Positions 1,619 to 25,616 of a stretch of 64,000 nt of DNA are shown in pieces. Origin of the DNA: Macrostomum lignano (lineage: Eukaryota); the NCBI GenBank assembly GCA_002269645.1, contig NIVC01000546.1, forward strand, positions 124,001-188,000, given 5' to 3'. Each line of letters opens with the position of its first letter. Within the stretch, counting starts at the first letter, position 1. The notes below the pieces were generated by a model, which searched no databases, was not told where the DNA came from, and was given only the letters and a program-made list of their open reading frames with translations. The position numbers and the translations under genes are program-made.

Positions 1619-3344
1619 TATTTTTACAACTTAGTTTGCTTCTTTTGCGAATTGTTTTTCTTTTGCTTCACCATTTTCCCTGAACTGCTCTTTCTTTCGC
1701 TTTCCTCTTGCCTTTCTTGGTTCTTGTGTTTTTCTGTTTTTGGTTGACTCAATTTTGCGACTTACCCCTGGTCAGCCACGATTTACGGTGGCCGAATCGG
1801 CCAGGTCGGCCAGCAGTTGCGCATGTATGTTCAGAAGTTTTTTTCAAATTCAAATCTTTTAAGTTTGCACTACACAGGGTAGTAGTGACATAGCAATGTC
1901 ACATGTCTCACAAGTCTTGCTATTAGCAAGCACATGGTGCATCACCAGGGTCCAAATTGTGTAGTAGTGTATGTGGGAACAAGAATCTTATCTTAGTTAA
2001 ATGTATGCTAGTATATGCCAAAAACAAAAAATTCCCTAAAATTTATGCCAGAAATTCCTCCTAAAAAGGTCATTCGGTTTTAATGAGTAGAGTTTTCTAA
2101 GAAAGGCATTTGTATAAAAAGTCTTTTTAAATATTATAAATATTTTCATTTTAAACAAACTTAAATTAAACCTACAGAAAAATAAATGCAAAATTAACAT
2201 TTTTGGCAATAATTTATATTAATTTTATTTATTGTTAATTTTAAAAAAGCAAAAAGTTTATCAATGACTTTCTAAAATATACAAATTTTCCTTTATTTTA
2301 TGTAAAAAGGTTAATTTACATTACAATTTTCATGCATGGCATGAATTTATTTACCACAATTAGTGCGCCAAAAAAATTGGCATGAATTTATGTGCCAAAA
2401 TTTGTATGTCAAAAAAATTGCATGAATTTGTATGCCAAAATTTGTATGCCAACTTTAAAAAGGGTCATTTGTATGCTGGAATTTTCTGGCATACATGTAA
2501 CCTTCCAGAGTCTAGGTGCATTGCTATCCATCACATGGCTTTGTTGACATTAGGCACCAGAGCAACTAACCCTCAATGGTTCACATCAAGGTCACACAGC
2601 ATTATGTTCTTGATGAATTCAATTACAGGAACAATAGATTGTGGCACTCAGGGTTGGCTAGGCCTAGTCATACTCAGACTTAGACTTTAAAGTCAAAAAG
2701 GGATTAAAATAATTTAGAGCAAGAAACTAAAAGATTACCCTTTGCTCTTTCCTTTGTTCTGCTTTTTAATTAGCTTAGGCTAGCCTACTTTTTAAAATAA
2801 ATTTTAAGAACCAAAAAAGAATGAAAAACAATTTGCTAACATAGTGGCATTGGCATATTATTGATATAGAGTAGCCTATACTGGCAAGAGTTTTTATTTT
2901 TGCCTAATTATTTGTTGCTTTACTTTTCTTAGAATTTAGTGCTTTAAATTTCCTTGGCTTGATTTTTAATTTCATATTTTTAGCTTTATAAAAACTTACA
3001 GCTACTAGTTGTAAAATATAAAGATGGAAACCTATTCTTGCCTAAAGCAATAGTTCAGAAGACTCTATATGTACCCCAGAAAAAAATGACCAATTTTTTG
3101 GTAAATGCCAATATATGCCAAATACATTACCTCTGCAAAACTTAATCTTGTCAATATTAAATGGTACTAGACTAGTGACTTTGATATTTAATTTCAATTA
3201 CATAAATTTAAAAACTAAAAATAATAATTATATTTGCATAATGTTTTGTATATATATACAGAACAAAAGCTAAAACACATTAAAGATAAAATCATAAATT
3301 ATAATGCATCTTTTTCAAGCCACTTCAATCAAGGCACCTGTGCC

Positions 3345-3482
3345 ATGGATGATAATGCATTAGCATCAGTGCCCAAGAAGAATGCATCAACCATAGAAAA
3401 GCGTATGAAGCTTACAAATGGATCAATTGCTGGCACAAATGCAGATTCTGCAATTGCTACTTCTGAGGAAGCAGAAAATGAT
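3345..3482 (+). CDS. PHRF1: PHRF1-like putative first coding exon (MDDNALASV...EEAEND)
   Basis: gccATGg Kozak context, donor gat|gttagt in phase 0 matching the next exon; no homology support. Confidence 0.5.
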
Positions 3483-6400
3483 GTTAGTAATGGTTGTGTT
3501 TCTTTTTTCTCACAGCCTCAATGGCATAGAGAGTGACAGTTAGGTTTGAAAGATGTGACAATCAGTGGGTCAGGAGTGGCAGTCAGTAGTTCAGTCAGAG
3601 GGAGTGGCAGTGGGTCAGGAGTGGCAGTCAGTGCATCAGGAGTGGCCATCAGTGGTTCAGAAGTGACAGTCGGTGTATCAGGAGTGTCAGTCAGTGGGTC
3701 AAGAGTGGCAGTCAGTGGGTCAGGAGTGGCAGTCAGTGGGTCAGGAGTGGCAGTCAGTGGGTCAGGAGTGGCAGTCAGTGGGTCAGGTGTAACAGTCAGT
3801 GGGTCAGGAGTGGCAGTCAGGTGTGACAGTCAGTGGGTCAGGTGTGACAGTCAGTGGGTCAGGTGTGACAGTCAGTGGGTCAGGAGTGACAGTCAGTGGG
3901 TCAGGAGTGACAGTCAGTGGGTCAGGAGTGGCAGTCAGTGGGTCAGGTGTGACAGTCAGTGGGTCAGGTGTGACAGTCAGTGGGTCAGGAGTGACAGTCA
4001 GTGGGTCAGGAGTGACAGTCAGTGTGTCAGGAGTGGCAGTCAGTGGGTCAGGAGTGGCAGTCAGTGGGTCAGGTGTGACAGTCAGTGGATCCGACCCTAT
4101 CCCAGCCCATCCCCACTCATTTGCTCGCACAGCCGCACACCTGCCCGCTGTGCCTCCGGCCGCTCGGTCAGCGCGAGGAGTGCTGCCATGCCGACACCTG
4201 CCCGCCCAGGCGGCGGCACAATTTCCACCTGGCCTGCCTGCTCAGCCACGTGGAGCGGCGCCGTGCCGCTGGCGACAGCGAATTTCGCTGCCCGGCGCCC
4301 GCCTGCAAGTCGGAGCCGCCGGCCGCTGCCGTCAACATTCGCTGCCGGCCAGGCGGCAAAGTCATCGACCAGGTGCCGCTGGCGGGCTCCGGCTGCTGCT
4401 TTGCCTGCCCCATCTGTCATGAGGTTGGCTTGCGCTTTCTTTGTGGGGTGCTTTCACAAACCCGAAACTTCACATTCCTCAAGACTCGAATTCACAACCT
4501 CCATACTTCACAATTCACATTGCCCACAACTACTTAAAGTGCATGCGTAAAAACTGAGAGTTGTGAAAATGCCTGCATTGAAATTGGGTGTTGTGAAGAA
4601 TTTCGGGTTTGTGAAGTTTCGGGCTTGTAAAGTTTCAGGCATTGTGAATTTTCGGATTTGTAAAGCTTTGGGTTTTTGAAATTTCGGGTTCGTGAAAGAG
4701 CTTTAAGACAACAATCTGTGGGAAGTAAAATTACTGATTGTGAAATGTAAAACACTTCGCAGTGAAATTATACTGTAAAGCGCATATGACTTTGCCTACT
4801 TGCAGTAGCCACGTTTGAAAATGTTTCCAATTGAATTCTATTCACCTATTCAAGGTGATTGCGGGCGAAGTTGCTCGACCCAGCGACTGTCGGCACGCCT
4901 TCTGCTTAGATTGCCTGCAGCGCTGGTGCCTGGCCTCCAACACCTGTCCATTGGATCGGCGCCCATTCAGCCACCTGCTGGTGGCGCCACGCTTTGGCGT
5001 CGGCGCGCGAGCCCGTAAAGTGCCCGCCCCGGCGCCACTGCCCGCTCCGCCGCCTGGCGCCGACGGCGAGGCCGACGATTTTCCGATCTTAGACGACGTC
5101 TGCGCTGTCTGCTTCCAGGGTGCGTGGGGAATCACCCCTCTGTGAAGAAGAATCGTGCCTCCATAAAAATCGCCTCTCTACGTAGAAAAATCGCCCCTAA
5201 ATTCAGAAAAATCGCCCCTACATTTAGAAAAATCGCCCCTCTATTTACAAAAAATCGCCCCTCTATTTACAAAAAATCGCCCCTCTATTTACAAAAAATC
5301 GCCCCTCTATTTACAAAAAATCGCCCCTTTACATCTACGAATAATAACCCAGAGTAGTTCTCGAATCAAAGATGAAATCGACTTGAGTACTTTTGCTGCC
5401 TCCATGTGCCTTGATTAATTGATCAGTTGAATCAATCGAAACGTGCAACAATTCTCTTAGGCGACCGCGAGGACCAGCTGTTGCTGTGCGACGGCTGCGA
5501 CACGGCCTACCACACCGACTGCCTGACTCCGCCGCTGTCGCGCGTCCCCGCTGGCCGCTGGTTCTGCCCGGACTGCCGGCGCGATCGTCGGGCCAACGGC
5601 GGCCGGCTTCGATGGCGACCCCTGGGCGATCAGCCGGCGGCGCTTCGGCGAACCCGGAGCTCGCTGGCTGCGGAGGCCTCGGCTGCTGCCGACGCCGGAC
5701 CCGCCGACGATACGGCCGTCTCGCTACCGTCCTACACGTCTGACGAAGCTGACGAAGACAGCTCAGTGCCGTCGTCTTCTTCGGCGGCTGGTTCAACAGC
5801 AGACTCCTCATCTGTGGATGATGAAGATGATGATGAGGAAGATGAGGAGGCTGACGGAGATGACAGCGAGTCTGGCGAAAATTCCGACTCCGCCAGCAGC
5901 ATAGACATCAGCTTCCTTCGCGAGCCGCTTCCCAGCCCGGCTGCTTCTGGCGACAAAGTCGAAGATGACGACGCCGATAGCATCGACATCAGCTTCCTGT
6001 ACGAGCCGCTGCCGGCGGCGTCGGTTGCGTCGACGTCCAGGGCGACTGGCGGCGCTGCCGGCAAACGACAACGACGTCGACGGAGCGCTGGTAAACGGAA
6101 GAAGGGGAAGAAGAGCAAAGCGAAGTCGAAGAAGGCTCCGGTTAGTACTGCCGTATTGAGATACTAAAGCACTACTCCAGACCTCTGTTAGCTGTCAAAT
6201 CTTGAGCAAAGACTTACGGGCAAAGTTCACATTGGAGGGCTGAATAATGCCAAGTACAACTACTGGCACAAAGCCCGGTATGAAATCAGATGCTTTGATT
6301 AAAATACTCGTAGATCCACATTCATTAGAGGTCAGGAAACAGCAATGGCTTCAATAAATTTGATTGCTGTTGCAAACTGGTGGGTTGCCACACGAAGGCC

Positions 6401-9400: not shown

Positions 9401-12400
9401 AATTAGTATTAAACTTCAAATTTACGAGTTGTTAATATTTTAATGTGTAAAAATGCATTATAAGCACAAGACCTTAAACTGAATCAACAAAAAATGTTTG
9501 GCTTTGGCTCATCGATAGCAAATAGTTCCAAGATTAATAAAGCTATTTAAAACTACACAAGCAAACTTGGATTTTTCTTGGATTTATTACTATTTCTGAA
9601 AGTCCTGATTTTTCTTCACAGGCATATCTAATAGCTACTATGCGTAAATATTTTAGTAATTTTACCATAATTGCTATACTATCTCTGAATATAATTGTCA
9701 TTTTGACAACACAACTTTTCTTACCAAGGGCTTTTTAATACCTTGAATTCTAAACAAAACCTACCTGTTCTCCTTTATTACTTTTTCTTCTTTTTAGCAA
9801 AGCCCGCACCCCAGAGCCGGAACAGCCCACTGAACAGTTCGACATTGGTCAAATCTTGCACGATCAGGACCTGCACTTGGCGCCGGCGCATTGCAAAACT
9901 ATTAAAAATAACAAAGAGGTCTGGACTGAGCAAGGCCGCCTGTGGTACCTGCGACAGCAACGCGGCCAACTCATGGCTGCCGCTAACAATCACCGCTCCG
10001 CTTCTGTGAAGTCCCCCCCGTCAGCCGCTGCGCCGCCGGTGACGCCTCCATCCCCCGCCACTCCGCCTCCCTCCTCTGCTTCCACTAAAAAAACTGTCAA
10101 CAACAATGCTGACAAATTTGCTGAGGACGATGAGATGGATATTGAAGAGCTGCCGCAGGTGACCAGCTTTCGCACCTGGACTCCTAGCGCTCCGTCTGCT
10201 CAGCAAGTGCTGCATCCTCATCATCAGCCGCCACCGCCGCATCGTCCTCCGTTTAACTTGGACTATTCTCGACCTCCGCCTCCTCTCCCGCTGCTCCGGC
10301 CGCCGCTGCCGCCGCCCCCTCCGCCGCCACCGCCTCCGCCACCGCCTCCGCCACCGCCTCCACCAGCCGAGCAGCAGCAGCAGCTCAGCGTCAGCGACCG
10401 CCTAGCCAATGGCTGCTTCCTCCCGACTGGCGCTCGCATTGCAGTTATCGGCACTAATAACACCAATAATAATAGTAATAGTAACACTAATAATAGCTCT
10501 TTCTCGGCAGCAGCAACAAAAACGATATTGGAGCAGCAGCTGCCGTCTTCGTCGCATCGCTCACCGTCGGAGCCGTCGCCAACGGGGCCGGGTCTGTCTG
10601 GAACTCGCCGAGCAGAATTCGCCAGCAAAGCGGATTGGCATGAGAGAATAGCGGCTGAGGTCAAGCTGACGCTAAGGCCGTATTATATCTCTAGGCGCAT
10701 AGACAAGGCCGATTATAAACAGTTGTTGAAGAAGGCCGTTACTAAGGTTAGTTATTGTGTTGTTCTCCCATAGCGATATAGACAGGGGTGCCCACCACAC
10801 GAGACAGTTGCGCCCACCAAGAGACAGAAGCACCCATCAAGAGACAGGGGCGCCCACCAAGAGACAGGGGCGCCCACCAAGAGACAGAAGCACCCATCAA
10901 GAGACAGGGGCGCCCACCAAGAGACAGGGGCGCCCACCAAGATATAGGGGTTGTTCATCAAGAGCCGGGTTTTCCACCAAGAGACGGGTTGTCCACCAAG
11001 AGACGGATTTTCCACCAAGAGACGGGTTTTCCATCAAGAGCCGGGTTTTCCACCAAGAGACGGGTTGTCCACCAAGAGACGGATTTTCCACCAAGAGACG
11101 GGTTTTCCACCAAGAGACGGGTTGTCCACCAAGAGACGGGTTGTCCACCAAGAGCCGGGTTTTCCACCAAGAGACGGGTTTTCCACCAAGAGACGGGTTG
11201 TCCACCAAGAGACGGGTTTTCCACCAAGAGACGGGTTTTCCACCAAGAGCCGGGTTTTCCACCAAGAGACGGGTTTTCCACCAAGAGCCGGGTTTTCCAC
11301 CAAGAGACGGGTTTCCCACCAAGAGACGGGCTTTCCACCAAGAGACGGGTTTTCCATCAAGAGCCGGGTTTTCCACCAAGAGACGGGCTTTCCACCAAGA
11401 GACGGGCTTTCCACCAAGAGACGGGTTTTCCACCAAGAGACGGGTTTTCCACCAAGAGACGGGTTTTCCACCAAGAGACAGAAGCACCCATCAAGAGACG
11501 GGTTTTCCACCAAGAGACAGAAGCACCCATCAAGAGACAGGGGCGCCCACAAAGATATAGGGGTTGTTCATCAAGAGCCGGGTTTTCCACCAAGAGACGG
11601 GTTGTCCACCAAGAGACGGGTTTTCCACCAAGAGACGGGTTTTCCACCAAGAGACAGAAGCACCCATCAAGAGACGGGTTTTCCACCAAGAGACAGAAGC
11701 ACCCATCAAGAGACGGGTTTTCCACCAAGAGACAGAAGCACCCATCAAGAGACGGGTTTTCCACCAAGAGACAGAAGCACCCATTAAGAGACAGGGGCGC
11801 CCACAAAGATATAGGGGTTGTTCATCAAGAGCCGGGTTTTCCACCAAGAGACGGGTTTTCCACCAAGAGCCGGGTTTTCCATCAAGAGACGGGTTTTCCA
11901 CCAAGAGCCGGGTTTTCCACCAAGAGCCGGGTTTTCCACCAAGAGACGGGTTTCCCACCAAGAGACGGGTTTTCCACCAAGAGCCGGGTTTTCCACCAAG
12001 AGACGGGCTTTCCACCAAGAGACGGGTTTTCCACCAAGAGACGGGTTTTCCACCAAGAGACGGGTTGTCCATCAAGAGCCGGGTTTTCCATCAAGAGCCG
12101 GGTTTTCCACCAAGAGACGGGCTTTCCACCAAGAGACGGGTTGTTTACCAAGAGTCAGGTCTGCCCGCCAAGAGACGGTGCCGCCCAAGAAGAGACAGGG
12201 GCGCCCACTAAGAGACAAGGGCACCCACCAAGAGACGGGGGCGCCAATTTGCTCTTCCAGAGAACCGGAGCGCCCACGACCTACCTAGAAGATTAGTGGC
12301 GCCCATATAGGGTGCTCCTTAGGATTGCGGTGACCCTCCAGTTAGAATTCCTGTATACAACACCCCTTGAGTCAGTAGTGTTTGATAAAAAAGGAATGTT

Positions 12401-15400
12401 GCAGCTTGTAGCAGTGCGGAGACAATCAAGAATCCCAGTCCTGTGTTTATCTAGGGCATAGAAATCTAGAATACTAACTGGAAGTGAAGGCTTTCGCGGG
12501 GGCGTACATACCCGGGCCGGGATAAAAAGCTCCTCTTCCCCAAAAGTTTTATTTCCCCAAAATTTTAATGTTTATTTATCATTCTTTTCATTGAAACAAT
12601 TTTATTTAAGGTATATTGCTTACCAAGAGTACACAAGTTATATTTCTCAAGCAGTGCAGTGAATGCAAAACTTACCATCAGTGGGCGCCAAACTTTGCAA
12701 CTTTTCTTACAGTCGGTCCAGTCGCTGATGCGGACAGGCGTTTAGTCCAGTTCTTTGCAGCAGTGTTAAACATCTTCCTGCACACCAGCTGCAAGATTGG
12801 ATGCTGATACTCACAATGCGTTTGGAATCGCAACTGTGGGAGTTGTTCAAAAATCTTGGAACAAACTGCTTCAAACAGACTGATGTGTCTGTACCTCGAT
12901 TTCAGAAATCGCTGACAGCGCTGCAGTTGCATGATTATCACCCAAGCCTCTTTGCAGATGGTGAACACCAGGTCAGAAGGGTTCGTTAGACCACCGCGGT
13001 CTAGCTGTCGCAGAAAGTCAGATGGCGCTTCGGCTGCAGATTCGTCTGGAGTGGCAACTAGTAGCTGGTTGCATGCAGTGCAGCTTCTTTGCGCTGTGAT
13101 GGACTTGGCGATTTTTCCAGCCACATAGTAGGTTACGTTGGCATCAGCTGCTTCGATCTCCTCAATTAGGTTTAGTTGGTCTGCAATTTGCCCGGCTTCT
13201 TCCATTAAGTCGCTGCCCTCGCTGTGCAGGTCCTTTGCAGCTGCAAGTGACTGAATTGTCTGTGGTGCAGCATGACTGAACTTCAGAACTGAAACAGAAC
13301 GGATTGCCTTCTCACCATCCAGAACATCTTTGCACGAAACATAGTAGTTTAATCCTTTTCGGTGACGGTACCATCCAAATCTTCCTTCCAGTGGGTCCGA
13401 CTGGAAAGCTCCGACCAGAACATATTCGAACATAAGACTATTGAGTAAGTACCTGCAGACTTCAACTAGAGCATCCAGCGTGTGACTGAGGGCCAGAAAG
13501 GTTTCGTCGCTAAGACCTTTGCTTCTGCAGGCCTTCCATTCGCGCAGATAATTAGCGACGTCCGCGAGGTAGGTAAGCTTCCAATCTGTGTCTGACCTGA
13601 CTGGATCTCGGCAACAGTCTCTTTTATGTTTGCCAATTGAGCTCGTCTTGACATTTAAAACTTTCCAAAGTTGCGTCACCGCATGGACAAAAGTCGCAGT
13701 GTCGCCCCACGGCTTTCCTTGATTCGCCGAGTAATATTCCAAGGCGTGCGCGGTAGACTCAGAAAACACAGCTAGTGCCAACTTTGGTGAGGTCTTCTGA
13801 ATACTTTTTGGATCGATGACGCTTGAGTTGAGTTTTGGGGCCAGTTTGAGTGGCTTGTCCTGTTCCAGATTGTACAGCTCTTTGATGTTCTCAAATTTTG
13901 CTACAATTAAGGAATCAGCCGTTCTCTTCACATGTGGTAGCGGGACATTAAAAAAGGCGCTATCTTTTGCTGGGAGCTCCAGAGACTGCCTTTTCTGAAA
14001 ATTGTTATATACGTTTTTAATTGTGTGCGTTGGGTCAAACAGAAGGAAAATCTTCTTTTCTCGATGGAACGGATGGGGTACGCATGTTTGCAGAATGCCA
14101 CCGCAAAGCTTGTGGACAAAAAACGCACGGTTTGCGGAATGGTTGTCAACCAAGATGGTCACTACATTAAGGTTTGTGCGCTGCAGCATCCCCATGACGC
14201 TCGTGTAGTGCTCGTGCAATATTTCGGCAGTCAACTTGCTGAGGGGGAAAAGTGCGACGACATCGCGGTACTTTCCGGCGATTGACTTGACCATGAAGCA
14301 CAGCATTGTTGAAGCCGGGTTGGCCTCCTGCATGCCAACAATAGACCCGGAAGAGTAGTCTATTCTTCGATTTAGGTGTATCTCATCAATAATCAGGTTG
14401 ACATTACTCTCCATTATTGACAGATTTTGAGTCCGTAGATGAAGGTAATTTTCGTCCGAGACGCCAGGGCTGACAGACAGAGGACTAGAAATCGCCGTTA
14501 GTCGTCTAACTGATGGCAGAACAAGCAGGTCTTGATCCAGCAGCACCTGGTAGCAAGCTGAACTGGTGGACTTCAGCACCATGGCAAACACTATCAAACC
14601 AGGGGAGTACCGTCTAGCCTCCTTTGCCTGGCAACGAAGCCTAAGCTGCTCCACTATAAACTGGATTTGCTGCATCAGTGGCGTGGCAGACTCATTCGAT
14701 TCCTCCAGCAAGTTGCACAGGCAATCGATGGCAGCTTCAATCCATTTAGCTTCTGCGCTTCTCGGATTGGGATCAGGGATGCCCCACGATTTTGCTAAAG
14801 CTAATAAGTTTTGAATCTGCGAAAACAAGGTGATCTTTCCGAGATCCAAAAATTGTTCAAATCGCTTCATTGGAACCGGTTGTCCTTTCAAACTTACAGA
14901 AGCAATCATATCGCGTTGAATTTTTACAGAGCAGACCAGATTCGGGACATCCTCCACATCAATCAGGCAGAACGCAATGGAGTCGGCGCCAAACACAGGA
15001 ACGAATCCAACAGGAATCGGATTGCTCTCTAGCATGGTCTTGATTTCCTCCAACGATCCCACTTTATCCAACGACAGAAACTCCGATGCCGCTGTTTCTA
15101 GCCTGTCACTTTCGGCTTGGTGTCGTAGCTCAGCTGTGGCTGATTCGGTCCGGGAAGTAGAAGCCATTGGCTGCAGTCTTTCCGGAAGTTGAGGAAAAAC
15201 AGAGGGGATGGCTCCCTTTCGTAAAACGCGCAGGCTCAGTTGCGCATTTCTCTTGCGCTTTCGACGAGTGTTGGAGTCTTGCGATGTGCTGATGAAGTCC
15301 GACTCCAAAAAGTGCGCAGAGCACAACCGAGACTCCTTAGTTGGGGCATAGTGCTCTCTGCGAATTCTTCGGAGCCACTCAGTCATCAGTTGTGGATCAT

Positions 15401-16138
15401 TTAACGGAAAGGCATGGAAAGATGTTTTCACATTCGATTCATTGTTCGAAGTCCTTCTTGCGTAGCCAGATTGGCAATTAAATGCAGCGCATTTGTATCC
15501 CATCTAGGCAAATTTGTGATATTCAGTTTTGGCAGGATTTGGGTGCTAACAGCCGGTTGCCTCTTTGTTATATATATTATTTTCCTGTGCAGAATACCGT
15601 TTGATGTACATTTCCCTCCTCTCGTTTCCCATATTCTTTCCTTCCTCCCAAGAATATGCCCACTCCTATTCAATTGATCGTGCACCACTGTAAAGAGCTC
15701 TCTGTTTTGCTCCAGTCCAGGGTTTGCTATCACTGTACGCTCGTACAGCATTTACAGTGTACATCTGGGTGCTGTCTGAGCTTGAAGGGAATGAAAGATG
15801 AAGGCATGAGCAACAAGAAAGAGTTTTAAAGGGCTGGGGGGTTTTTGGGAGGGTCTTTTGGATGCGGGTTTAGTCACTATAACATTTTCAAGCTAAAAAG
15901 AATCGGCCCGGGTAGGTACGACTTGAACTCCCCGACAAAGAAGCCTTCACTTCCAGTTAGTATTCTAGATTTCTATGTCTAGGGCCAGTGGTTCGCTAAT
16001 GCACTCCAACACTCCCTCTCCAAACTGCAGATCGCGCGCAGCCATTCGCAGGATGTGCAGCCTGATCGAACTCGCCAGTTTGTCAACACCTACGTTGAAA
16101 AGCATTTGAAAGCTAAGCGTAGGTCTTCTAAATCTTGA
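3345..16138 (+). CDS. PHRF1: PHD and RING finger domain-containing protein 1-like (RING-RING-PHD...SRI), join(3345-3482,4133-4423,4855-5119,5461-6140,6632-6918,[7124-7183],9798-10746,16031-16138), about 905-925 aa
   Basis: Spliced RING CPICHE|[35 protein letters not shown]; PHD CAVCFQG|[38 protein letters not shown]; C-terminal SRI-like [35 protein letters not shown]|[25 protein letters not shown]. All junctions are GT-AG and phase-consistent (0,0,1,0,2,2,0). Confidence 0.88.
3561..4088. repeat. Minisatellite, 21 bp unit gtcagtgggtcaggagtggca / gtcagtgggtcaggtgtgaca (PHRF1 intron 1)
   Basis: Direct tandem repetition; explains the [14 protein letters not shown] ORFs. Confidence 0.95.
4133..4423 (+). 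CDS. PHRF1: PHRF1-like exon: first RING-H2-like module and start of second RING
   Basis: Acceptor gcacag|ccg, donor gag|gttggc; CPLC..C..HNFHLAC..CPAPAC. Confidence 0.85.
4451..4698. mobile_element. Candidate foldback MITE with internally repeated ttcacaaacccgaaa motifs
   Basis: Left ctttcacaaacccgaaacttc versus right gaaatttcgggttcgtgaaag (imperfect inverted repeat); no clear TSD. Confidence 0.45.
4855..5119 (+). CDS. PHRF1: PHRF1-like exon: second RING and start of PHD
   Basis: Acceptor ttcaag|gtg, donor g|gtgcgt (phase 1); [19 protein letters not shown]. Confidence 0.92.
5167..5330. repeat. Short minisatellite, 21-22 bp unit aaaaaatcgcccctctatttac
   Basis: Direct tandem repetition in a PHRF1 intron; shares the AATCGCCC core with the 23.1-kb array. 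Confidence 0.9.
5461..6140 (+). CDS. PHRF1: PHRF1-like exon: PHD finger, acidic tract, basic NLS-like tail
   Basis: Acceptor ctcttag|gc, donor ccg|gttagt; [13 protein letters not shown] motif. Confidence 0.92.
6632..6918 (+). CDS. PHRF1: PHRF1-like exon (basic region)
   Basis: Acceptor acttag|gca in phase 0, open frame, donor ag|gtgagc in phase 2. Confidence 0.75.
7124..7183 (+). CDS. PHRF1: Possible 60-nt symmetric (phase 2-2) cassette exon
   Basis: accag|a...cctag|gtaccg, open in the correct frame; weak polypyrimidine tract. Confidence 0.35.
9798..10746 (+). CDS. PHRF1: PHRF1-like exon: Pro-rich region and N-terminal part of the SRI (Pol II CTD-binding) domain
   Basis: Strong acceptor ttttcttctttttag|c (phase 2), donor aag|gttagt. 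Confidence 0.9.
10785..12250. repeat. Minisatellite, 19-20 bp units ccaccaagagacgggtttt / ggggcgcccaccaagagaca (PHRF1 last intron)
   Basis: Direct tandem repetition; explains the many [11 protein letters not shown] ORFs. Confidence 0.95.
12457..15977 (-). mobile_element. Full-length P-superfamily DNA transposon (3521 bp) with 37-bp TIRs and 7-bp TSD TCTAGGG
   Basis: TIR catagaaatctagaatactaactggaagtgaaggctt at 12457-12493 and its exact reverse complement at 15941-15977; tctaggg at 12450-12456 and 15978-15984; encodes a THAP transposase. Confidence 0.96.
12678..15503 (-). CDS. P-element/THAP9-like transposase, 941 aa, intronless, uninterrupted
   Basis: N-terminal THAP C2CH finger (CAAFNC...FHAFP...EWL...LCSAHF...GAIPSVF); RNase H-like acidic residues in IIDE, LVDN and SDPLEGRFG; DPTH(TIKN) motif; C-terminal YYVAG..CxxC..RGGLTNPS region. 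Confidence 0.95.
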   Translation of the reverse strand: MGYKCAAFNCQSGYARRTSNNESNVKTSFHAFPLNDPQLMTEWLRRIRREHYAPTKESRLCSAHFLESDFISTSQDSNTRRKRKRNAQLSLRVLRKGAIPSVFPQLPERLQPMASTSRTESATAELRHQAESDRLETAASEFLSLDKVGSLEEIKTMLESNPIPVGFVPVFGADSIAFCLIDVEDVPNLVCSVKIQRDMIASVSLKGQPVPMKRFEQFLDLGKITLFSQIQNLLALAKSWGIPDPNPRSAEAKWIEAAIDCLCNLLEESNESATPLMQQIQFIVEQLRLRCQAKEARRYSPGLIVFAMVLKSTSSACYQVLLDQDLLVLPSVRRLTAISSPLSVSPGVSDENYLHLRTQNLSIMESNVNLIIDEIHLNRRIDYSSGSIVGMQEANPASTMLCFMVKSIAGKYRDVVALFPLSKLTAEILHEHYTSVMGMLQRTNLNVVTILVDNHSANRAFFVHKLCGGILQTCVPHPFHREKKIFLLFDPTHTIKNVYNNFQKRQSLELPAKDSAFFNVPLPHVKRTADSLIVAKFENIKELYNLEQDKPLKLAPKLNSSVIDPKSIQKTSPKLALAVFSESTAHALEYYSANQGKPWGDTATFVHAVTQLWKVLNVKTSSIGKHKRDCCRDPVRSDTDWKLTYLADVANYLREWKACRSKGLSDETFLALSHTLDALVEVCRYLLNSLMFEYVLVGAFQSDPLEGRFGWYRHRKGLNYYVSCKDVLDGEKAIRSVSVLKFSHAAPQTIQSLAAAKDLHSEGSDLMEEAGQIADQLNLIEEIEAADANVTYYVAGKIAKSITAQRSCTACNQLLVATPDESAAEAPSDFLRQLDRGGLTNPSDLVFTICKEAWVIIMQLQRCQRFLKSRYRHISLFEAVCSKIFEQLPQLRFQTHCEYQHPILQLVCRKMFNTAAKNWTKRLSASATGPTVRKVAKFGAH
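16031..16138 (+). CDS. PHRF1: PHRF1-like terminal exon completing the SRI domain
   Basis: Acceptor ctccctctccaaactgcag|atc, phase 0; [25 protein letters not shown] resembles the PHRF1/SCAF11 SRI end; stop TGA at 16136-16138. Confidence 0.85.
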   Translation: MARSHSQDVQPDRTRQFVNTYVEKHLKAKRRSSKS

Positions 16139-16734: not shown

Positions 16735-17375
16735 GATATATTTGAATGAATTTGGGATCTGGAGTGTCAGATAAGATTCGGGGTCTGGGATGCCAGTGAA
16801 GATTTGGGATATCAGATTTGGGATCTGGGATGCCAAGATATGGGATCCGGGATGTCAGATTTGGGATCTGGGATGTAAAATTTTGGATCTGGAATGTCAA
16901 TTTTGGGATCCGGAATGTCAGGTTTGGGATCCGGGGTGTCAGATTTGGGATCTTGGATGTCAGATTTGGGATCTGGAATGTCAGATTTGGGATCCGAAAT
17001 GTCAGGTTTGGGATCCGGGATGTCAGATTTGGGATCTGGGATGTCAGGTTTGGGATCCGGGATGTCAGATTTGGGATCCGGGATGTCAGATTTGGGATCT
17101 GGGATGTCAGATTTGGGATCTGGGATGTCAGATTTGGGATCCGAGATTTCAGATTTGGGTCCGGGATGTCAGATTTGGGATCTGGGATGCTAAGGTTTTG
17201 TATCTGGAATGTCAGATTTGGGATCTGGGATGCCAGAGATTATTTGGAATCTGGGATGCCAGAGATTATTTGGAATCTGGGATGCAAAGATGTGGTATGT
17301 GGGGTGTCAGAAGATTTGGAATCTGGGATGCCATATTTGGCATCTGGACTGTCAGAGAAGATTTGGGATCTGGGA
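16735..17375. repeat. Minisatellite, 21 bp unit gatttgggatctgggatgtca
   Basis: Direct tandem repetition. Confidence 0.95.
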
Positions 17376-17869
17376 AGTCATTATAAACTGATGTATTCGT
17401 AAATGGCCTGTCATCAATATTCTTATCTCAGACTGCACTTCAGGTTATAGTACAAGCGCTTGTACTTTATTATGTTTTGCTGTAAATAAACTACTTGACT
17501 TGATGGTTTCGCGAATTAATCGATGAGAACTGGGATGTTCAAAGCAAGCGCTCATTTGCCAAGAAACAGTATTTTTAATGTTCAAGTTTCGTTTCTTTCT
17601 TTAAACTGTGCTGTATTCGTAAATAATTGGTAAATCAAATAGAGATCTGAATAGGGCTCCGGGCGATATCCTGCAGGCCAACTATATTCGGTGGCAGAAG
17701 CAATGATTATTTATGCCACTGTATCCGCATTGCAGGTAGATTACAATTTGGTCTTGTGAAAGTGGTGAGCAAGGCAATTTGCATTCTATTGCAGTCTTGT
17801 TCATCTTCATCCGCAAGGTATATGCTGCTTAAAATAATATTGTTACGATGTATTGTGGCGGCAGAAGGG

Positions 17870-18410
17870 GGCAGAGGTGTTTGGGGACAAGGGGTATCAG
17901 AGCGGCTGAGGGAAACGGGATGTTTAGGGTCAAGGGGTATTAGAGCGGCTGAGGGAAACGGGATGTTTAGGGTCAAGGGGTATTAGAGCGGCTGAGGGAA
18001 ACGGGATGTTTAGGGTCAAGGGGTATTAGAGCGGCTGAGGGAAACGGGATGTTTAGGGTCAAGGGGTATTAGAGCGGCTGAGGGAAACGGTGTTTAGGGA
18101 CAAGGGGTATTAGAGCGGCTGAGGGAAACGGTGTTTAGGGACAAGGGGTATTAGAGCGGCTGAGGGAAACGGTGTTTAAGGACAAGGGGTATTAGAGCGG
18201 CTGAGGGAAACGGGGTGTTTAGGGTCAAGGGGTATTAGAGCGGCTGAGGGAAACGGTGTTTAGGGACAAGGGGTATCAGAGCGGCTGAGGGAAACGGGGT
18301 GTTTAGGGTCAAGGGGTATTAGAGCGGCTGAGGGAAACGGTGTTTAGGGACAAGGGGTATCAGAGCGGCTGAGGGAAACGGGCTGTTTGAGGGCAACGGC
18401 AAGGGGTATG
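17870..18410. repeat. Minisatellite, 41-43 bp unit tagagcggctgagggaaacgggatgtttagggtcaaggggtat
   Basis: Direct tandem repetition downstream of the GPCR. Confidence 0.95.
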
Positions 18411-18657
18411 TATACTCATAAGAGCGACAGAGAGGAGTGCTTGGGTGCTCCAGGTACTCTACAATGATCAAATGTCGGGAGGCATCAATCTTATCCGTAC
18501 AACGGATATTAAATAAATACCCATGGCTAGTTGCCGTTGCTTATTTTATTTATTTCAAGGGTTGTTTTAACAATGTCGCATGTCGGTGCTTTAAGATGTG
18601 GTTAAGTTTTAAATCAAACGCAACTTGTCAAATTTCGATGTGAATCTTCTTTGGTCC

Positions 18658-20091
18658 TCAACCGGTTTCTTCATCGTTGCAAACTGCATCGTTAAACAGC
18701 GATGGGAGCAGATTTGGATGCAGTACCTCATCATCGTCCCCAATAAGCTCGCATCGGATTGAGTTATTGCAAACTTCTTCGGTCGGAGTGGCGTGAACGA
18801 TAAAGTCTATTCGGTTCTCCAGGGTTTTGGTGCCTCCACCGCTGCGGAACGGCCCTGCTGTGCTGCTGCTCCCGCGGCGGTACGCAGCTGGCGCGTTGCG
18901 GCGCGCCGCCATCCGGACACTGGCTTGATAGGCAATGAAATCCGACACTGACGAGCTCAGTAGCACCTGGTCATCTACCGTCAGTTGCTTGTCCCCATCG
19001 TCAGCCTGACGGTGACTGGCGAAGCTTTCCAAAGCCTGAAGTTCGCAGGCTTCGGCCAAGTCGCTGTCGACCATAGAGACGGTCTCGCACTGCCGCATGC
19101 AGCAGCGGCCAACTTGGGCAAGAAGCTCCTTCAGATCGTGCCAGAAGTCTTGACAGCAGGCGTAGAGCACAGGATTGCAGGCGCTGTTTAGGTAGCCCAT
19201 GGCGGTGGTCAAGTGAAGCATCACAATCTGAGTGTGCTGGGGTATGAGGCTTCTCGAGGCTAATTCAACTTGTATCCAATAGAGCAGTGAGCAGGCAAAG
19301 TTTAGTAAAATAATTGCCGTCACTACTCGGCTGACGCGGTCCAGCAGCTTCCGGCTCTGTTTTGCTACTTTTTTCACCTTTTTCACCTTGACAATCAGCG
19401 TGCGAACAATGAAGGCGTAGAAGATGACCAGCAGCACAAATGGCAGGATGCCGCAGGCAGCGAACATGGCCTTCCTGGCCAGGGCCAGACTGGGATAGTG
19501 ACTGACCAGCTTAGAATCGAAGGTCTGCTCGCTGATCACCAGCGAGACATTGAATGCAGCGGCATGGCTCGTGCTGACTTTGTGGCCGCAGTTCTGCCGA
19601 ACCGATTTGCTGGTTGAGTTCGGCTTAATCGACATCATCAGTCTGGAGTGCACGGCCATTGGACTCACCACTACAGCGCTGAGGAGCCACAGAGCCGTGA
19701 GCAGGCCCCACACGAAGCGGCTGCTGCGTAGTGTTGCGGCAAACTGCGGCTTCACCACGCTGATGTAGCGGTCGAATGCCATGGCGGTGACGATGAAGAT
19801 CCCGGCTGTCCAGTTGACGTAGTGCATCGCGTGATAGATGGCGCATCCTGGCAGGCCCCAGGCCCAGCTGTCCACCTCGGCCATGTAGACCATGGGCAGA
19901 ATTCCCAGCAGGTGAAGAATGTCCGCCAAGGCCAGATGGCCCAGGTAGATGCGCAGCGCTGTGTGCAACTTGGACTTCCGGACTAAAATGATCGTGGCGA
20001 GTACGACAGCGTTGCCCAGAATGCCCAAGGCGCTCAGAATGCCCAGCAACTTCCAGACGACTTTCATGCCGTTAATCATCGATTCCGACAT
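18658..20091 (-). CDS. Class A (rhodopsin-like) neuropeptide GPCR, somatostatin/allatostatin-C/opioid receptor-like, 477 aa, single exon
   Basis: Seven hydrophobic segments; GNAVV (TM1), LALAD (TM2), WAWGLPGC (ECL1/C3.25), AFDRY (TM3), YLNSACNPVLY (TM7). Subfamily assignment is by remembered motif similarity only. Confidence 0.9.
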   Translation of the reverse strand: MSESMINGMKVVWKLLGILSALGILGNAVVLATIILVRKSKLHTALRIYLGHLALADILHLLGILPMVYMAEVDSWAWGLPGCAIYHAMHYVNWTAGIFIVTAMAFDRYISVVKPQFAATLRSSRFVWGLLTALWLLSAVVVSPMAVHSRLMMSIKPNSTSKSVRQNCGHKVSTSHAAAFNVSLVISEQTFDSKLVSHYPSLALARKAMFAACGILPFVLLVIFYAFIVRTLIVKVKKVKKVAKQSRKLLDRVSRVVTAIILLNFACSLLYWIQVELASRSLIPQHTQIVMLHLTTAMGYLNSACNPVLYACCQDFWHDLKELLAQVGRCCMRQCETVSMVDSDLAEACELQALESFASHRQADDGDKQLTVDDQVLLSSSVSDFIAYQASVRMAARRNAPAAYRRGSSSTAGPFRSGGGTKTLENRIDFIVHATPTEEVCNNSIRCELIGDDDEVLHPNLLPSLFNDAVCNDEETG

Positions 20092-20558
20092 TTGCTGTTT
20101 TTAGTTGGTTCGTTCTTTGTGTCTGAATCTTGATTGATTGATTGAATTTTGAGGCAGCTTGTCGGCCGTGGGTCGCAAATTTTTCCTTTTTTATCTTACC
20201 CTCAAGTGGGAGAACTGTTTGATTGGGCAGGTATTCAAGCTCTGATTTGCCGGCAAGAATTTCACTTTTCAGGTGATAAGAAATCAACGGTAATCCTTTT
20301 GTATTCATTAAGCCGTTCCCGATCTCATGGGCCAAAAGTTTAAACTAAACTACGGATTAGGGGTATTTTCAGGGTGTCGGGTGCGGGGTGCTTTTGAGGA
20401 AAGTAGTGGTCGCTTTTTGGTCTATAGTTACTGGTTAAGGCAGCGGCCCCTCCCCCAATCGCCCACATTAAAATGCGCTCCTCCAAGAACTAAAGAAAAA
20501 AGCATCCAAGCTGAACGAATGGCAAGAGCTCAATTTTGCCACCTACCACTCTTGGAGG

Positions 20559-21250
20559 CAGAGACAAGGGCGCTAGTCCAGAGACAGGGCGCCAACCCAG
20601 AGACAAGGGCGCCAACCCAGAGACAGGGGCGCCAACCCAGAGACAGAGGCGCCAACCCAGAGACAGGGGCGCCAACCCAGAGACAAGGGCGCTAACCCAG
20701 AGACAGGGGCGCCAACCCAGAGACAGGGCGCCAACCCAGAGACAAGGGCGCCAACCCAGAGACAAGGGCGCCAACCCAGAGACAGGGGCGCCAACCCAGA
20801 GACAAGGGCGACAACCCAGAGACAGGGGCGCCAACCCAGAGACAAGGGCGCCAACCCAGAGACAAGGGCGCCAACCCAGAGACAAGGGCGCCAACCCAGA
20901 GACAAGGGCGCCAACCCAGAGACAAGGGCGCCAACCCAGAGACAAGGGCGCCAACCCAGAGACAAGGGCGCCAACCCAGAGACAGGGGCGCCAACCCAGA
21001 GACAGGGGCGCGAACCCAGAGACAGGAGCGCCAACCCAGAGACAGGGCGCCAACCCAGAGACAGGGGCGCCAACCCAGAGACAGGGCGCCAACCCAGAGA
21101 CAGGAGCGCCAACCCAGCGATAGGAGCGCCAACCCAGAGACAGGGGCGCCAACCCAGGGACAGGGGCGCCAACCCAAAGACAGGGGCGTTCACCAAGAGA
21201 CAGAGGCGCCCACCAAGAGACAGGGCGCCCACCAAGAGACAGGGACGCCC
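20559..21250. repeat. Minisatellite, 20 bp unit ggcgccaacccagagacaag
   Basis: Direct tandem repetition; terminal units resemble those of the 10.8-kb array. Confidence 0.95.
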
Positions 21251-21825
21251 AACAACAGACCAGCACCCTAAACAGTGGCTATGTTGGCTGGAGTCTGAGT
21301 TTCTTGATTTCATCATTTTCTCAACCTCAAGCACCTCCGACGAAACGTCCCCTAAGCCTCCCTGTCTGTAATTACCGAATCACCGGTAAGCCAATCTGGG
21401 CGGAGCCCGGTGCAGCAACCGGTCACATTTTTAACAAAGATTTTGCGGGCCGGAGACTCTGGAATTATGGGACAATTTCTGCTGACTACCCCGACTACTT
21501 GCATGTTCCCTAATTCCAAAGATTTCCCATTTCAATCGAATCTCTATCAGAGGGGAGGCCCCGAGCGAAGATGCTCGATGATTTTCAAAAAAATTACACC
21601 CGACAAAGATACGAAATCTCGAAGGAAAGTTTTTCCAGGAGACTACTGAAAGTAGGAGTTACACGTTAGGAAATGTTTGAATTTAAGTAGGGAATTTTTG
21701 TTTATATTTCTTGAATTGTAGGTTTCAGATTCGGCTGCATTTTGCTCACTAACTGATATTTGAGTGCAGCCCTATGAGTTTTTCTAAGCACAAAATATCT
21801 AAACGCTACAATGTCAGTCTAAACG

Positions 21826-22415
21826 CTAAAATTTCAATCTAAGCACCACAATGTCAGTATAAGCACCACAATGTCAGTCTAAGCACCACAATGTCAGTCT
21901 ATGCACCACAATGTCAGTCTATGCACCACAATGTCAATATCTAAGCACCACAATGTCAGTATCTAAGCACCACAATGTCAGTATCTAAGCACCACAATGT
22001 CAGTATCTAAGCACCACAATGTCAGTATCTAAGCACCACAATGTCAGTATCTAAGCACCACAATGTCAGTCTATGCACCACAATGTCAGTCTATGCACCA
22101 CAATGTCAATATCTAAGCACCACAATGTCAGTATCTATGCACCACAATGTCAGTATCTAAGCACCACAATGTCAGTATCTAAGCACCACAATGTCAGTAT
22201 CTAAGCACCACAATGTCAGTCTATGCACCACAATGTCAGTATCTAAGCACCACAATGTCAGTCTATGCACCACAATGTCAGTATCTAAGCACCACAATGT
22301 CAGTATCTAAGCACCACAATGTCAGTCTATGCACCACAATGTCAGTATCTAAGCACCACAATGTCAGTCTATGCACCACAATGTCAGTATCTAAGCACCA
22401 CAATGTCAGTCTAAG
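21826..22415. repeat. Minisatellite, 20/22 bp unit ctaagcaccacaatgtcagtat
   Basis: Direct tandem repetition. Confidence 0.95.
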
Positions 22416-23129
22416 CTACCAAAACTACGCTATAGCTCCAACTGTAGCTGTACACTATACTCAGTGTGTGTATCACGGTTTACAAGTAGATACGAGTAGA
22501 TGGAATAAAACAGTGGCGCCAATTCAATCAGCAGTTTTAGGAGAGTAAAGAAATAGGGGGGGGGGTGACTATGCTGCAGTGATGTGGCAAAACTGGGGAA
22601 GCTGGGAGCTCATGTAAAACCAAGGAGACCAGTTACGGATGTCTGGAGAAGCTACGAGGCCAGCGCTGCATGCTAAAGAAACAGATTAATTCTGTGCATG
22701 AATTGTTTTTGAGCTGTAAAATCAAAATCAGACCAAGTTTACACAAGTGATTCAGCAGAACTTTAGTTGTTATTCTGTAAACTGAGGAACTGCGCGCTGT
22801 CCTTAGAGTTGGCACTCCAGACCTCGGCTCTGGGCCTCCTCGGCGGAGGCTGCATAAAATTCGGCCATTATTGATCGAGGCTCGACTGACGCCTTGCCGG
22901 AGGGTTGGAATTGGATTCTGCGGAACTCAGCACGCAGCCTCCCTCCTGCTTCTGGCGTGTTAATGTTGTGTGCACTGCTATGGAGCTGCTTGGCTGTGGG
23001 CTGCTTATGCCTGAGAATTTTCTTCATTACTAAAGGGTCATTGTTAACCCTAAGATGGGTTGATTTAAATTAGAGACTATTTTCCAGACAAACTACTCTT
23101 ATAGTCTTATTAGATCATTCTCAAAGAAC

Positions 23130-23450: not shown

Positions 23451-23980
23451 GATTTGTATTTAACGAACGAAGTTTATTCGTTAAATACAAATTTTCCCAT
23501 GAGAATTGTTCAATTAAACTAAGCATTTCGAAATTAAAGCACTGGGGAAATCACCATGGCAACCGCATGCTGAACTGCTTTCAAGTGAGTTGGTTGAGCA
23601 CACAACTGGTTCTAATGGGAACCATTTATAACAAATATATGGAGCCCAATAATTGTGAAGTGTTTACAATGAGGAGAGCCTGAAACATTGGCCAGATTTC
23701 CATCCGCAGTGTCAACACGGCAGGTTTTGTAGCAAAAAAGCAGCAATGCCAATACAGACTGGCATATTGCGACTGTTTGACTGACTTCTCTTCACTGGAG
23801 GCAAACAGCCAGCCGGTCTGGAGGGTGCCGGCGGGGAGGTCACGTGACCCTCTTGAACGAATGAAAATACGCGCTCTCTCTGCAGAGTAACGAGCCACAA
23901 CGAAATTAAGCTTGACTCTGTTAAAAGCAAGATATTTCGTTTGAGTCTTTGAAATTAGGAAACCAACAAGCAGCTGTGAG

Positions 23981-24300
23981 CATGGAGAGATGTAGGGCGA
24001 GCGTGGAGAGATGTAGGGCGAGCATGGAGAGATGTAGGGCGAGCGTGGAGAGATGTAGGGCGAGCGTGGAGAGATGTAGGGCGAGCATGGAGAGATGTAG
24101 GGCGAGCGTGGAGAGATGTAGGGCGAGCGTGGAGAGATGTAGGGCGAGCATGGAGAGATGTAGTAAGGCGAGCGTGGAGAGATGTAGGGCGAGTGTGGAG
24201 AGATGTAGGGCGAGCGTGGAGAGATGTAGGGCGAGCGTGGAGAGATGTAGGGCGAGCGTGGAGAGATGTAGGGCGAGCGTGGAGAGATGTAGGGCGAGTG
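23981..24300. repeat. Minisatellite, 21 bp unit gagcgtggagagatgtagggc
   Basis: Direct tandem repetition. Confidence 0.95.
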
Positions 24301-24357
24301 GCATGAAAGCAAAACTATTGCAGGAGAGACGAGCAGAGAAGAGGAAAAGAGCTTCCA

Positions 24358-24578
24358 ATGAGAAGAGCGGAGAAGAGCGGAGAAGAGCGGAGAAGAGCGG
24401 AGATAAGCGGAGAAGAGCGGAGATAAGCGGAGAAGAGCAGATAAGAGCGGAGAAGAGCGGAGAAGAGCGGAGAAGAGCGGAGATAAGCGGAGAAGAGCGG
24501 AGATAAGCGGAGAAGAGCGGAGATTAGCGGAGAAGAGCGGAGAAGAGCGGAGAAGAGCGGAGAAGAGCGGAGAAGAAG
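24358..24578. repeat. 10 bp repeat agaagagcgg/agataagcgg
   Basis: Direct tandem repetition. Confidence 0.95.
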
Positions 24579-25616
24579 AGTGGATATTGCAAGGACAAAA
24601 CAAAGAGGAGTCGCTGTCTCCCATGCGGCGGCAGGCACACTGCGGAGCGAAAGCTCACTGGCTGGGCCACTCTCAGAGGTGCAAGCATGCAGAACCCAAC
24701 CCGTCTACATGACCAGATGGCCTCAAGGGCCAGTGCAGTTATTGATCCAGAGTTGTATCGCGAGAGCAAGTTCAAGATCTGTCTGTCTGTCTGCTCAAGT
24801 TCGCGCAAGAGAAAGGTCACACAAACCGCACAGTTGACGGCTCATCTTAGATAGGGACACAATATATATTGGCCAGTCATTAACACCTGGCCAGGTAGAT
24901 GGCATAGGGCATTGAATGGGATCTATTCATTACTATACATATGCTCGAAGGACAGACAGATGCACAAGTGCCGGGAGATCCCCGGCCACTTCAAACAAAT
25001 TGGAACCCTATAGAGACGTTGGTTCCGGCGGCTGTGCCTTGGGGGGGGGAGCGAAGCAAAACTCGATGTTTCGGAATTTGAAAAAAGTTTCAAAGTGTCT
25101 GCATTAGCTTACCTGAGTTAGTTATTAATTTATTGAAAATTTCTAGTTTAATCACTCCTGTAATAGAATTTATCCCCAAGCCCTTCGAGTTATTAGGCTA
25201 TAAATCCTTATTGGCGCCGCGTGTCAATAAATGATTTGCAGATGTTTGAATATTAATTTCTGTCCCAGTCTCCAGTGCACACAATCTATCTATATAGAGC
25301 TATGAGCCCTTGGGGCGGTTTTCTAACAACCATTTTATATATCGAACCAGTTGGAGACTGCAAGCAGACGCTACTTAAGTATGCGAGGCGGACTGCATTG
25401 AGCAGATATGAGATGAACGAACAAACTCAAGAATAAGCATTTCCGCAAACACCCGTTCTCTAATCCCATCCGATCTGAACCATACATTGAACTGTGTTTG
25501 CGTCAGTGTTCGATTTTCAACGGTCATTGAGCAGAGCTGACAAATATTTGGCCAGCCGGGTTGCGAACTTGCGCAACCAATTCATGTAATTATAGGCACT
25601 TGATTGCTCTAGCCTG

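Follow-up and report, generated by a model that had tools for sequence, protein, structure and literature searches.

A transposable element of the P superfamily lies within a stretch of 64,000 nucleotides from the flatworm Macrostomum lignano (contig NIVC01000546.1, positions 124,001 to 188,000), which we call the window. The element occupies 3,521 bp on the minus strand (12457-15977) and is intergenic, placed between a minisatellite with units of 19-20 bp (10780-12245) and another with units of 21 bp (16801-17356). It is bounded by terminal inverted repeats (TIRs) and by a target-site duplication (TSD), and it carries a single open reading frame (ORF) that runs from ATG to stop over 2,826 nt, without introns or interruption, and encodes a transposase of 941 amino acids (aa). 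The ATG faces the 15977 end, and this side is therefore the 5′ end of the element. The features are collected in Table 1.

Table 1. Features of the P-superfamily element of M. lignano, numbered by position in the window.
Feature	Position	Strand	Remarks
TSD, copy adjoining the 3′ end	12450-12456	.	TCTAGGG, the same 7-mer as at 15978-15984
3′ TIR, 37 bp	12457-12493	-	Terminus CATAG...; fully complementary to the 5′ arm
3′ spacer, 9 bp	12494-12502	-	TCGCGGGGG on the plus strand, read directly; sequence not conserved in relatives
3′ inner inverted repeat, putative transposase (THAP) site	12503-12519	-	Core TACATACCCGGGCC at 12505-12518, positions 49-62 from the 3′ terminus
Three AATAAA polyadenylation-type signals (putative function)	12601-12606, 12571-12576, 12548-12553	-	Between the stop codon and the 3′ inner repeat
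Transposase ORF, 941 aa	12678-15503	-	Intronless
THAP domain, aa 5-103	15195-15491	-	Pfam
RNase H, N-terminal part, aa 346-462	14118-14468	-	Pfam
GTP-binding insertion domain, aa 534-621	13641-13904	-	Pfam
Catalytic D373 (LIIDEIH)	14385-14387	-	Aligned to Drosophila D230 (numbering of PMC7776569)
Catalytic D453 (LVDNHS)	14145-14147	-	Aligned to Drosophila D303
Catalytic E706 (SDPLEGRFG)	13386-13388	-	Aligned to Drosophila E531; D703 aligned to the GTP-contact residue D528
5′ non-coding region, presumed promoter and 5′ untranslated region	15504-15903	-	From inner repeat to ATG; 400-530 bp in relatives
5′ inner inverted repeat, putative transposase (THAP) site	15904-15920	-	Core TACCTACCCGGGCC at 15905-15918, positions 60-73 from the 5′ terminus
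5′ spacer, 20 bp	15921-15940	-	11 bp longer than the 3′ spacer
5′ TIR, 37 bp	15941-15977	-	Fully complementary to the 3′ arm
TSD, copy adjoining the 5′ end	15978-15984	.	TCTAGGG

The two arms of the TIR are complementary at every one of their 37 nt. Allowing up to three mismatches, the TIR occurs at these two sites only in the 64 kb, where shuffled sequences lead us to expect 0.00. The heptamer TCTAGGG flanks the element on both sides, and since the next base outward differs between the two sides the length of the TSD is 7 bp. Inside the TIRs there is a second inverted pair, complementary at 16 of 17 positions and confined to two mirrored sites in the window (0.13 expected per window at up to three mismatches). 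It is the best of the subterminal inverted matches, with a score that none of 200 shuffles reached. An earlier note on this DNA had drawn attention to the perfect TIRs, the 7-bp TSD, the unbroken THAP transposase, the inner pair and the spacers of 20 and 9 bp, and every one of these is present as it was described.

The inner pair is not placed symmetrically. It carries the bipartite motif TAC-N6-GGGCC, which starts at position 60 counted from the 5′ terminus and at position 49 counted from the 3′ terminus, so that the two ends differ in structure. The difference of 11 bp corresponds to one helical turn, and the motif thus faces the same side of the DNA at either end.

Is this unequal spacing peculiar to the one copy? 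A scan of metagenome contigs provided 80 loci with relatives, and all their elements were oriented with the gene on the plus strand. Complete elements with both TIRs matching are found at L002, L005, L011, L014, L019/L021, L023, L030, L035, L058 and L087. Twelve complete elements were scored, comprising the window copy and 11 relatives, two of which (L019 and L021) represent a single family. In 11 of the 12, the 5′ arm of the best subterminal inverted match lies further in than the 3′ arm, by +10 or +11 bp, and in these conforming elements the offset score was reached by 0 or 1 of 200 shuffles. The exception is L006, which has a duplication inside its 5′ TIR. L087 adds another offset of +11, together with a 7-bp TSD (GTTTGCC). 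Among the complete relatives with matching TIRs the longer arm is on the gene-upstream side without exception. The suggestion of the earlier note that the end asymmetry has been conserved is thus upheld in about ten families. TSDs of 7 bp are found for the window copy, L021, L030, L058, L087 and L081.

The complete elements are built to a common plan, in which a TIR of 28-40 bp starting with CA(T/A/G)G is followed by an unrelated spacer and then by the second inverted match. This second match is the bipartite motif TAC-N6-RGGCY, with its T located at 56-63 from the 5′ terminus and at 45-52 from the 3′ terminus. A survey of about 40 single ends, using loci where at least one end could be read, gives a range of 56-64 (mode 61-63, n about 18) for the 5′ end and of 45-53 (mode 51, n about 19) for the 3′ end. 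The two distributions do not overlap, and there is a subgroup at 56/45. All the exceptions in the survey are decayed copies with duplications or deletions internal to the TIR (L003, L006, L022, L026 and L043). The lengths of the spacers vary among the relatives because the length of the TIR varies, and the constant features are how far the motif lies from the terminus and the offset of about 11 bp, rather than spacers of 20 and 9 bp.

The inner repeat is also the most conserved block of the subterminal regions. The mean pairwise identity between families is 0.67-0.68 for the motif, compared with 0.50 for the outer TIR, 0.34-0.35 for the spacers and 0.27 for the 20 bp further in. The transposases of the complete relatives are 54-73% identical to one another and 36-42% identical to that of the window. 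Loss of the inner repeats among copies had been named in advance as an outcome that would speak against a functional site; tested across families, the repeats proved to be conserved. The geometry has been held while the sequence of the spacers has turned over, and this is therefore evidence for selection on the geometry itself. We conclude that the asymmetrically placed motif is very probably under functional constraint.

Some further observations concern the ends of these and related elements. L006 (2619-2660) and L026 (818-860), which are unrelated, each have a tandem duplication of 8-9 bp in the 5′ TIR only (TCCTATATAG TCCTATATAG and TATAACAG TATAACAG), whereby the 5′ motif has been pushed to about 70-72 nt. 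L087 is an intact relative (JGI Ga0558126_03592, 17190-22751) on a 61-kb contig that is packed with hAT and pogo/Tc5-type DDE_1 transposons. In the window element, the heptamer CCCAAAA deserves mention. It occurs six times in the whole window counting both strands, against 11.4 expected, and three of the six are subterminal in the element and point inward, at 12539-12545 (+), 12556-12562 (+) and 15843-15849 (-), the first two 83 and 100 nt from the 3′ terminus, the third 129 nt from the 5′ terminus. They could form a further set of subterminal repeats, like the 11-bp internal repeats of Drosophila P, on what is a post hoc comparison of small numbers.

M. lignano has a second, older P family, represented by L081 (NIVC01000016.1, 19643-27225; element at about 2237-5807), with a protein identity of 35%. 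It has a 17-bp TIR, CAGGGAATCCTAAAGAC, and a 7-bp TSD, GTCCAGC, and lies inside the range of a gene for an adhesion-type G-protein-coupled receptor (GPCR; 7tm_2/GPS). As a test case for the offset L081 was set aside; its 3′ end keeps AGGCCGA at 55-61, while the 5′ end is rearranged and gives no usable offset. The only repeats common to the window and L081 are low-complexity matches.

The transposase has the domains expected of this superfamily. The THAP domain scores 55.3 bits with Pfam PF05485 (cut-off 23.9), and the same region matches the solution structures of THAP1 and THAP2. The N-terminal part of a TNP-like RNase H domain scores 49 bits, above the gathering cut-off, and the TNP-like GTP-binding domain (GBD; PF21788) 37.5 bits against a cut-off of 24.8. 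A profile built from the window protein and 17 relatives finds the Drosophila P transposase chain 6p5a with E=4e-23, aligning LIIDEIH on FDEM (D230), LVDNHS on SDLG (D303) and SDPLEGRFG on QDIVEHFFG (D528, E531); we confirmed that the numbering of the chain is equal to the native numbering. D373, D453 and E706 are assigned as the catalytic triad because they align with D230, D303 and E531. All three are invariant in 18 of 18 sequences, as are the zinc ligands C5, C10, C61 and H64, and D453 and E706 are separated by 253 residues.

The structural prediction is in agreement. For the AlphaFold model (mean predicted local distance difference test score of 74) the top match in the PDB found with Foldseek is the strand-transfer complex of the Drosophila P transposase (6pe2/6p5a), with E=1.5e-17, a target-normalized TM score of 0.66-0.70 and 18% identity. 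Hermes and RAG1 trail far behind, the RAG1 chains giving weak matches with E about 2e-3. Eight residues that hold GTP have been reported for the Drosophila enzyme (PMC7776569), and five of these contacts are kept, as K557, S581, W613 (in place of F), N617 and D703. From the sequence, use of GTP by the window transposase is plausible; it is nevertheless uncertain, because the other three contact residues are changed. The model also shows a five-stranded beta module at aa 167-210 (nt 14874-15005), outside the part that matches 6p5a. It follows the coiled-coil helices (aa 124-160) and precedes the helical region aligned to Drosophila TNP.

With a THAP domain, a split RNase H core with a D-D-E triad, and TIRs with a TSD in the range of 7-8 bp, the element is a member of the P superfamily (P/THAP9-type). 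It lies outside the canonical P family, with a TIR of 37 bp, a TSD of 7 bp, an intronless gene for 941 aa, no site of the TAAGTGTA type and only 18% identity to the Drosophila transposase. That this is an intact and autonomous P-superfamily element we regard as almost certain.

Taking these results as a whole, the best explanation is in our judgement an intact autonomous P element with asymmetric ends like those of Drosophila, and we think it probable that this is correct. By analogy with the Drosophila system the element could function as follows. The transposase would bind the subterminal TAC-N6-GGGCC through its N-terminal THAP zinc finger, while the helix-turn-helix (HTH) and the RNase H/GBD core would engage the 37-bp TIR and the cleavage site. 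A flexible coiled-coil linker might then allow a single oligomer to pair a long end with a short one. A productive paired-end complex would require one end of each type, as in the 12/23-like rule that has been suggested for Drosophila P, and the 11-bp difference could enforce this pairing of one 5′ with one 3′ end. The D373/D453/E706 triad would excise the element and reinsert it with a staggered cut of 7 bp at the target.

A number of points weigh against this reading, and bear on its different parts. The motif of the relatives, TAC-N6-RGGCY, is unlike the THAP consensus of either Drosophila or human. The relatives are not phylogenetically independent, though divergence between their spacers is complete. 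More distant P-like proteins (L082-L086, 24-34% identical) gave no convincing TIRs or readable ends, since their contigs are too short or the copies decayed. Pdre2, Galileo and D. buzzatii P do not have the plan with an offset of 11-12 bp, and the likeness to the Drosophila offset could be homologous or convergent, as both fit the present sample. In the transposase, the three changed GTP contacts are K400 to S572, V401 to P573 and D444 to K614, the last being N in the relatives. No other copy, deletion derivative or empty site is present within the 64-kb window, and the evidence for a second locus is a gene model from an older assembly.

That gene model bears on the age and the mobility of the copy. 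The top database match of the transposase is the M. lignano protein A0A1I8H379, which has two substitutions relative to the window ORF in the comparable region. Its remaining differences are gaps, clearly due to false introns in the model, and at its C-terminus the model runs on into a different THAP exon. Since this exon has no counterpart in the window, A0A1I8H379 seems to come from another insertion site. The exact sequence of the window transposase is without a database record. The faultless TIRs and TSD, the open frame and the copy with two substitutions apparently elsewhere together indicate an insertion that is recent in evolutionary time. Judging from the sequence, the chances that the window copy is still mobile are about even.

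The competing reading that survives best is that the copy looks intact and is nonetheless immobile, being silenced by PIWI-interacting RNA (piRNA) or chromatin, or disabled by missense changes such as might affect the GTP pocket, so that its perfect condition would be due only to its youth. A young copy that is silenced or disabled is compatible with all the observations, and K614 is the kind of change that such a reading calls for, as is the solitary state of the copy in the window. Against this, the zinc and catalytic residues are intact, no stop interrupts the 2,826 nt, the TIRs match at 37 of 37 and the TSD at 7 of 7 positions, and an independent database copy that differs by just two residues argues for very recent amplification. 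In the window copy 25 of the 242 columns of high conservation are changed, but this is expected of an outgroup, and other outgroup sequences deviate at 33-62 columns. We therefore rejected such deviations as a sign of decay, because their number tracks phylogenetic distance. On balance we think immobility rather unlikely.

A second alternative accepts that the motif is functional, and supposes that it is bound by another part of the transposase, such as the HTH region or the beta module at aa 167-210, or by a host factor, with the THAP domain binding elsewhere in the ends. The motif of the relatives does not match the published THAP consensus TXXGGGX(A/T), and the model does contain a beta-rich module outside the Drosophila alignment. 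In zebrafish, the motif selected by the THAP domain of THAP9 in systematic evolution of ligands by exponential enrichment (SELEX) is absent from Pdre2 (PMC10983969), and this makes it unsafe to assume a relation of THAP domain to site. On the other hand, in the only member studied biochemically the unequally spaced internal sites are THAP sites (PMC7776569, PMC3698922). The HTH of the Drosophila protein, moreover, contacts the inner half of the TIR. THAP domains, as Sabogal et al. reportedly showed in 2010, recognize DNA through bipartite groove contacts, and a bipartite motif of 14 bp would fit such recognition. An assignment of the motif as a classical THAP site was also considered and rejected; in the window CCCGGGTA matches TXXGGGX(A/T) at seven of eight positions, which is weak, and the relatives do not have it. 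By analogy with Drosophila we favour the THAP domain, with modest confidence, as the reader of the motif, and consider a different reader improbable.

It might also be argued that the inner repeats are simply the inner part of an ancestral TIR of about 75 bp that has been split by an indel of 11 bp, in which case they would have no function and the likeness to Drosophila would be coincidental. For the window copy alone, a TIR, a gap and a second match is just the pattern expected of an indel in a long TIR, and degenerate relatives do gain indels in their ends (L003, L006, L022, L026 and L043). Yet the +10/+11 offset recurs with the longer arm upstream of the gene in about ten families whose spacers are unrelated; the motif is more conserved (0.67) than either the outer TIR (0.50) or the spacers (0.34); and a neutral indel would not hold its length while its sequence turns over. 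We consider this explanation very improbable. Finally, a domesticated THAP9-like host gene without a transposon can be dismissed, even though THAP9-type genes lacking transposon hallmarks are common in animals (PMC7776569) and a preprint lists Macrostomida among the taxa with homologues of the THAP9 RNase H, because the gene is enclosed precisely by perfect TIRs of 37 bp and a TSD of 7 bp, and because a unit of the same kind and of element size (3.5-3.75 kb) is found again in relatives, with a separate TSD in each.

The surroundings of the element are rich in repeats. The 19-20-bp array has the unit AGACAGGGGCGCCCACCAAG and lies 200 bp to the left of the element, and a related 20-bp array, CAGAGACAGGGGCGCCAACC, is found at 20559-21249. 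On the right the 21-bp array at 16801-17356 is accompanied by a 42/84-bp array at 17876-18393. Further to the left there are exons of a PHD-finger gene (PHRF1-like) at 5427-6167 (+) and 9856-10773 (+), which differ from M. lignano A0A1I8JG96 by small indels and have identities of 98% and 96% to it. From this divergence the window would seem to contain a paralog or homeolog, or to derive from another strain, and the identity of 96-98% is in keeping with the 180 Mb of duplicated blocks (at least 95% identical) in the genome (PMC5730564). Both these exons and the transposase match assign the window to M. lignano or a very close relative. A single-exon ORF for a rhodopsin-family GPCR lies at 18658-20091 (-), 2.7 kb from the element (7tm_1, E=2e-35). 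Neither a database protein at E<=1e-30 nor an exact record was found for it, and the public protein sets of M. lignano apparently do not include it. More distant is a ubiquitin carboxyl-terminal hydrolase of the USP type, with large exons at 46498-49260 (-) and 52841-54469 (-) that contain UCH, DUF3517 and UCH_UBL1. Long ORFs at 23626-24624 and 25609-26118 are translations of tandem repeats (SPYISPR and LRSSPLFSAL; EERRG units) and are probably not genes.

What is the significance of the offset? The reason why the ends of P elements are unlike, and how the transposase pairs them, is known from Drosophila only, where the 12/23 rule serves as the explanatory analogy. The same polarity with an offset of 10-11 bp is now seen in about ten families with transposase identities of 36-73%, and the question of end pairing thereby becomes testable across a clade. 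If the interpretation is true, roughly twenty natural variants and an apparently intact copy in M. lignano constitute a comparative and experimental system for studying how unlike ends are measured and paired. The element itself is an ordinary member of a known superfamily and implies no new mechanism, and the clade-wide offset is a modest but real comparative result. M. lignano is the only flatworm with routine transgenesis. Methods based on random integration and on piggyBac are already available, of which piggyBac works inefficiently. Use of the element as a vector, a mutagen or a tool for transgenesis is speculative. It would be more promising in related flatworms that do not have the element, because resident copies and silencing would interfere in M. 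lignano.

It is instructive to compare the element with other systems, one of which is the metagenome clade. The clade shares with it a length of 3.5-3.75 kb, an intronless ORF (943-966 aa where intact), a 7-bp TSD and a TIR of 28-40 bp, and the TIR of L014 closely resembles that of the window. The non-coding regions of the clade are 400-530 bp at the 5′ end and 220-300 bp at the 3′ end. The differences lie in the core of the motif, AGGCC in the clade and GGGCC in the window, in the protein identity of 36-42%, and in the subterminal regions, which in the clade are rich in CTGCAGC-type repeats that the window copy does not have.

Pdre2/zfTHAP9 of the zebrafish is likewise a P-superfamily element from outside the insects; it has TIRs, subterminal inverted repeats and a TSD, and its transposase has excision activity (PMC10983969). 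However, its TIRs are 13 bp, its 12-bp subterminal repeats are about 400 bp inside the element, and its TSD is 8 bp; its ends contain no recognizable THAP motif, and a helical-turn offset is unreported. Galileo, 1360, D. buzzatii P and BuT5 share a THAP-type transposase, and Galileo and 1360 have a TSD of 7 bp (PMC3698922). Yet Galileo has very long TIRs with multiple THAP sites, while D. buzzatii P has 3-bp TIRs and seven exons, and its putative sites lie 90-97 nt from the 5′ end and about 202-209 nt from the 3′ end, in reversed orientation. An offset of 11-12 bp is seen in none of these elements. At the protein level, Macrostomida are listed among the taxa with THAP9 RNase H homologues (bioRxiv 10.64898/2026.09.03.748810). 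Our search of the literature found no paper on a Macrostomum P element or its ends, and no report of a 5′/3′ offset outside Drosophila.

The remaining comparison is with Drosophila P. The Drosophila element is 2,907 bp in length. Its experimentally defined THAP sites are at nt 54-61 and nt 2859-2866 (PMC3698922, Table 1); given the length of the element, the second site is 42-49 nt from the 3′ terminus, and the 5′ site is 12 bp further in. These coordinates bear out the polarity that the earlier note had assumed, with the longer arm at the 5′ end, and contradict a review that gives ‘9 bp and 21 bp, respectively’ for the 5′ and 3′ ends (PMC7776569, section 4), where the wording is inverted in what appears to be a slip; for comparisons of polarity the coordinates are to be preferred. 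In both elements the DDE triad aligns, the TIR starts with CAT, and each end has one inverted internal site, with the 5′ site deeper in the element by roughly one helical turn: 12 bp in Drosophila (54-61 and 42-49) and 11 bp in the window (60-73 and 49-62). The absolute positions of the sites differ, at 53/41 in Drosophila and 58/47 in the window. Of the close match between spacers of 20/9 and 21/9 bp to which the note had pointed, the polarity and the helical-turn offset stand, whereas the near-identity of the numbers is in part a coincidence of where the TIRs end. There are clear differences in other respects. The Drosophila element (2.9 kb; PDB 6P5A/6PE2) encodes 751 aa in four exons with regulated splicing of IVS3, compared with the intronless 941 aa of the window, and the two proteins are about 18% identical; the TIR and TSD are 31 and 8 bp, compared with 37 and 7 bp. 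The sequences of the sites are unrelated, AT(A/C)CACTTAA / TAAGTGTA in Drosophila and TAC-N6-GGGCC in the window, and the 11-bp internal enhancer repeats of Drosophila P have no established equivalent in the window element.

Transposition of Drosophila P reportedly needs one 5′ and one 3′ end that are not interchangeable, as Mullins, Rio and Rubin are said to have found in 1989. The two types of end have been likened to the 12/23 recombination signals (PMC7776569). The signals used by RAG1/2 under the 12/23 rule also come as two types, with spacers that differ by about one helical turn; they belong to another transposase superfamily, and the likeness is one of functional analogy only. It is possible, and we hold the idea only tentatively, that the offset represents an ancient, selected requirement of P-superfamily transposition rather than a peculiarity of Drosophila, a 12/23-like rule of one end of each kind, inherited from a common ancestor of the insect P elements and the flatworm and metagenome clade.

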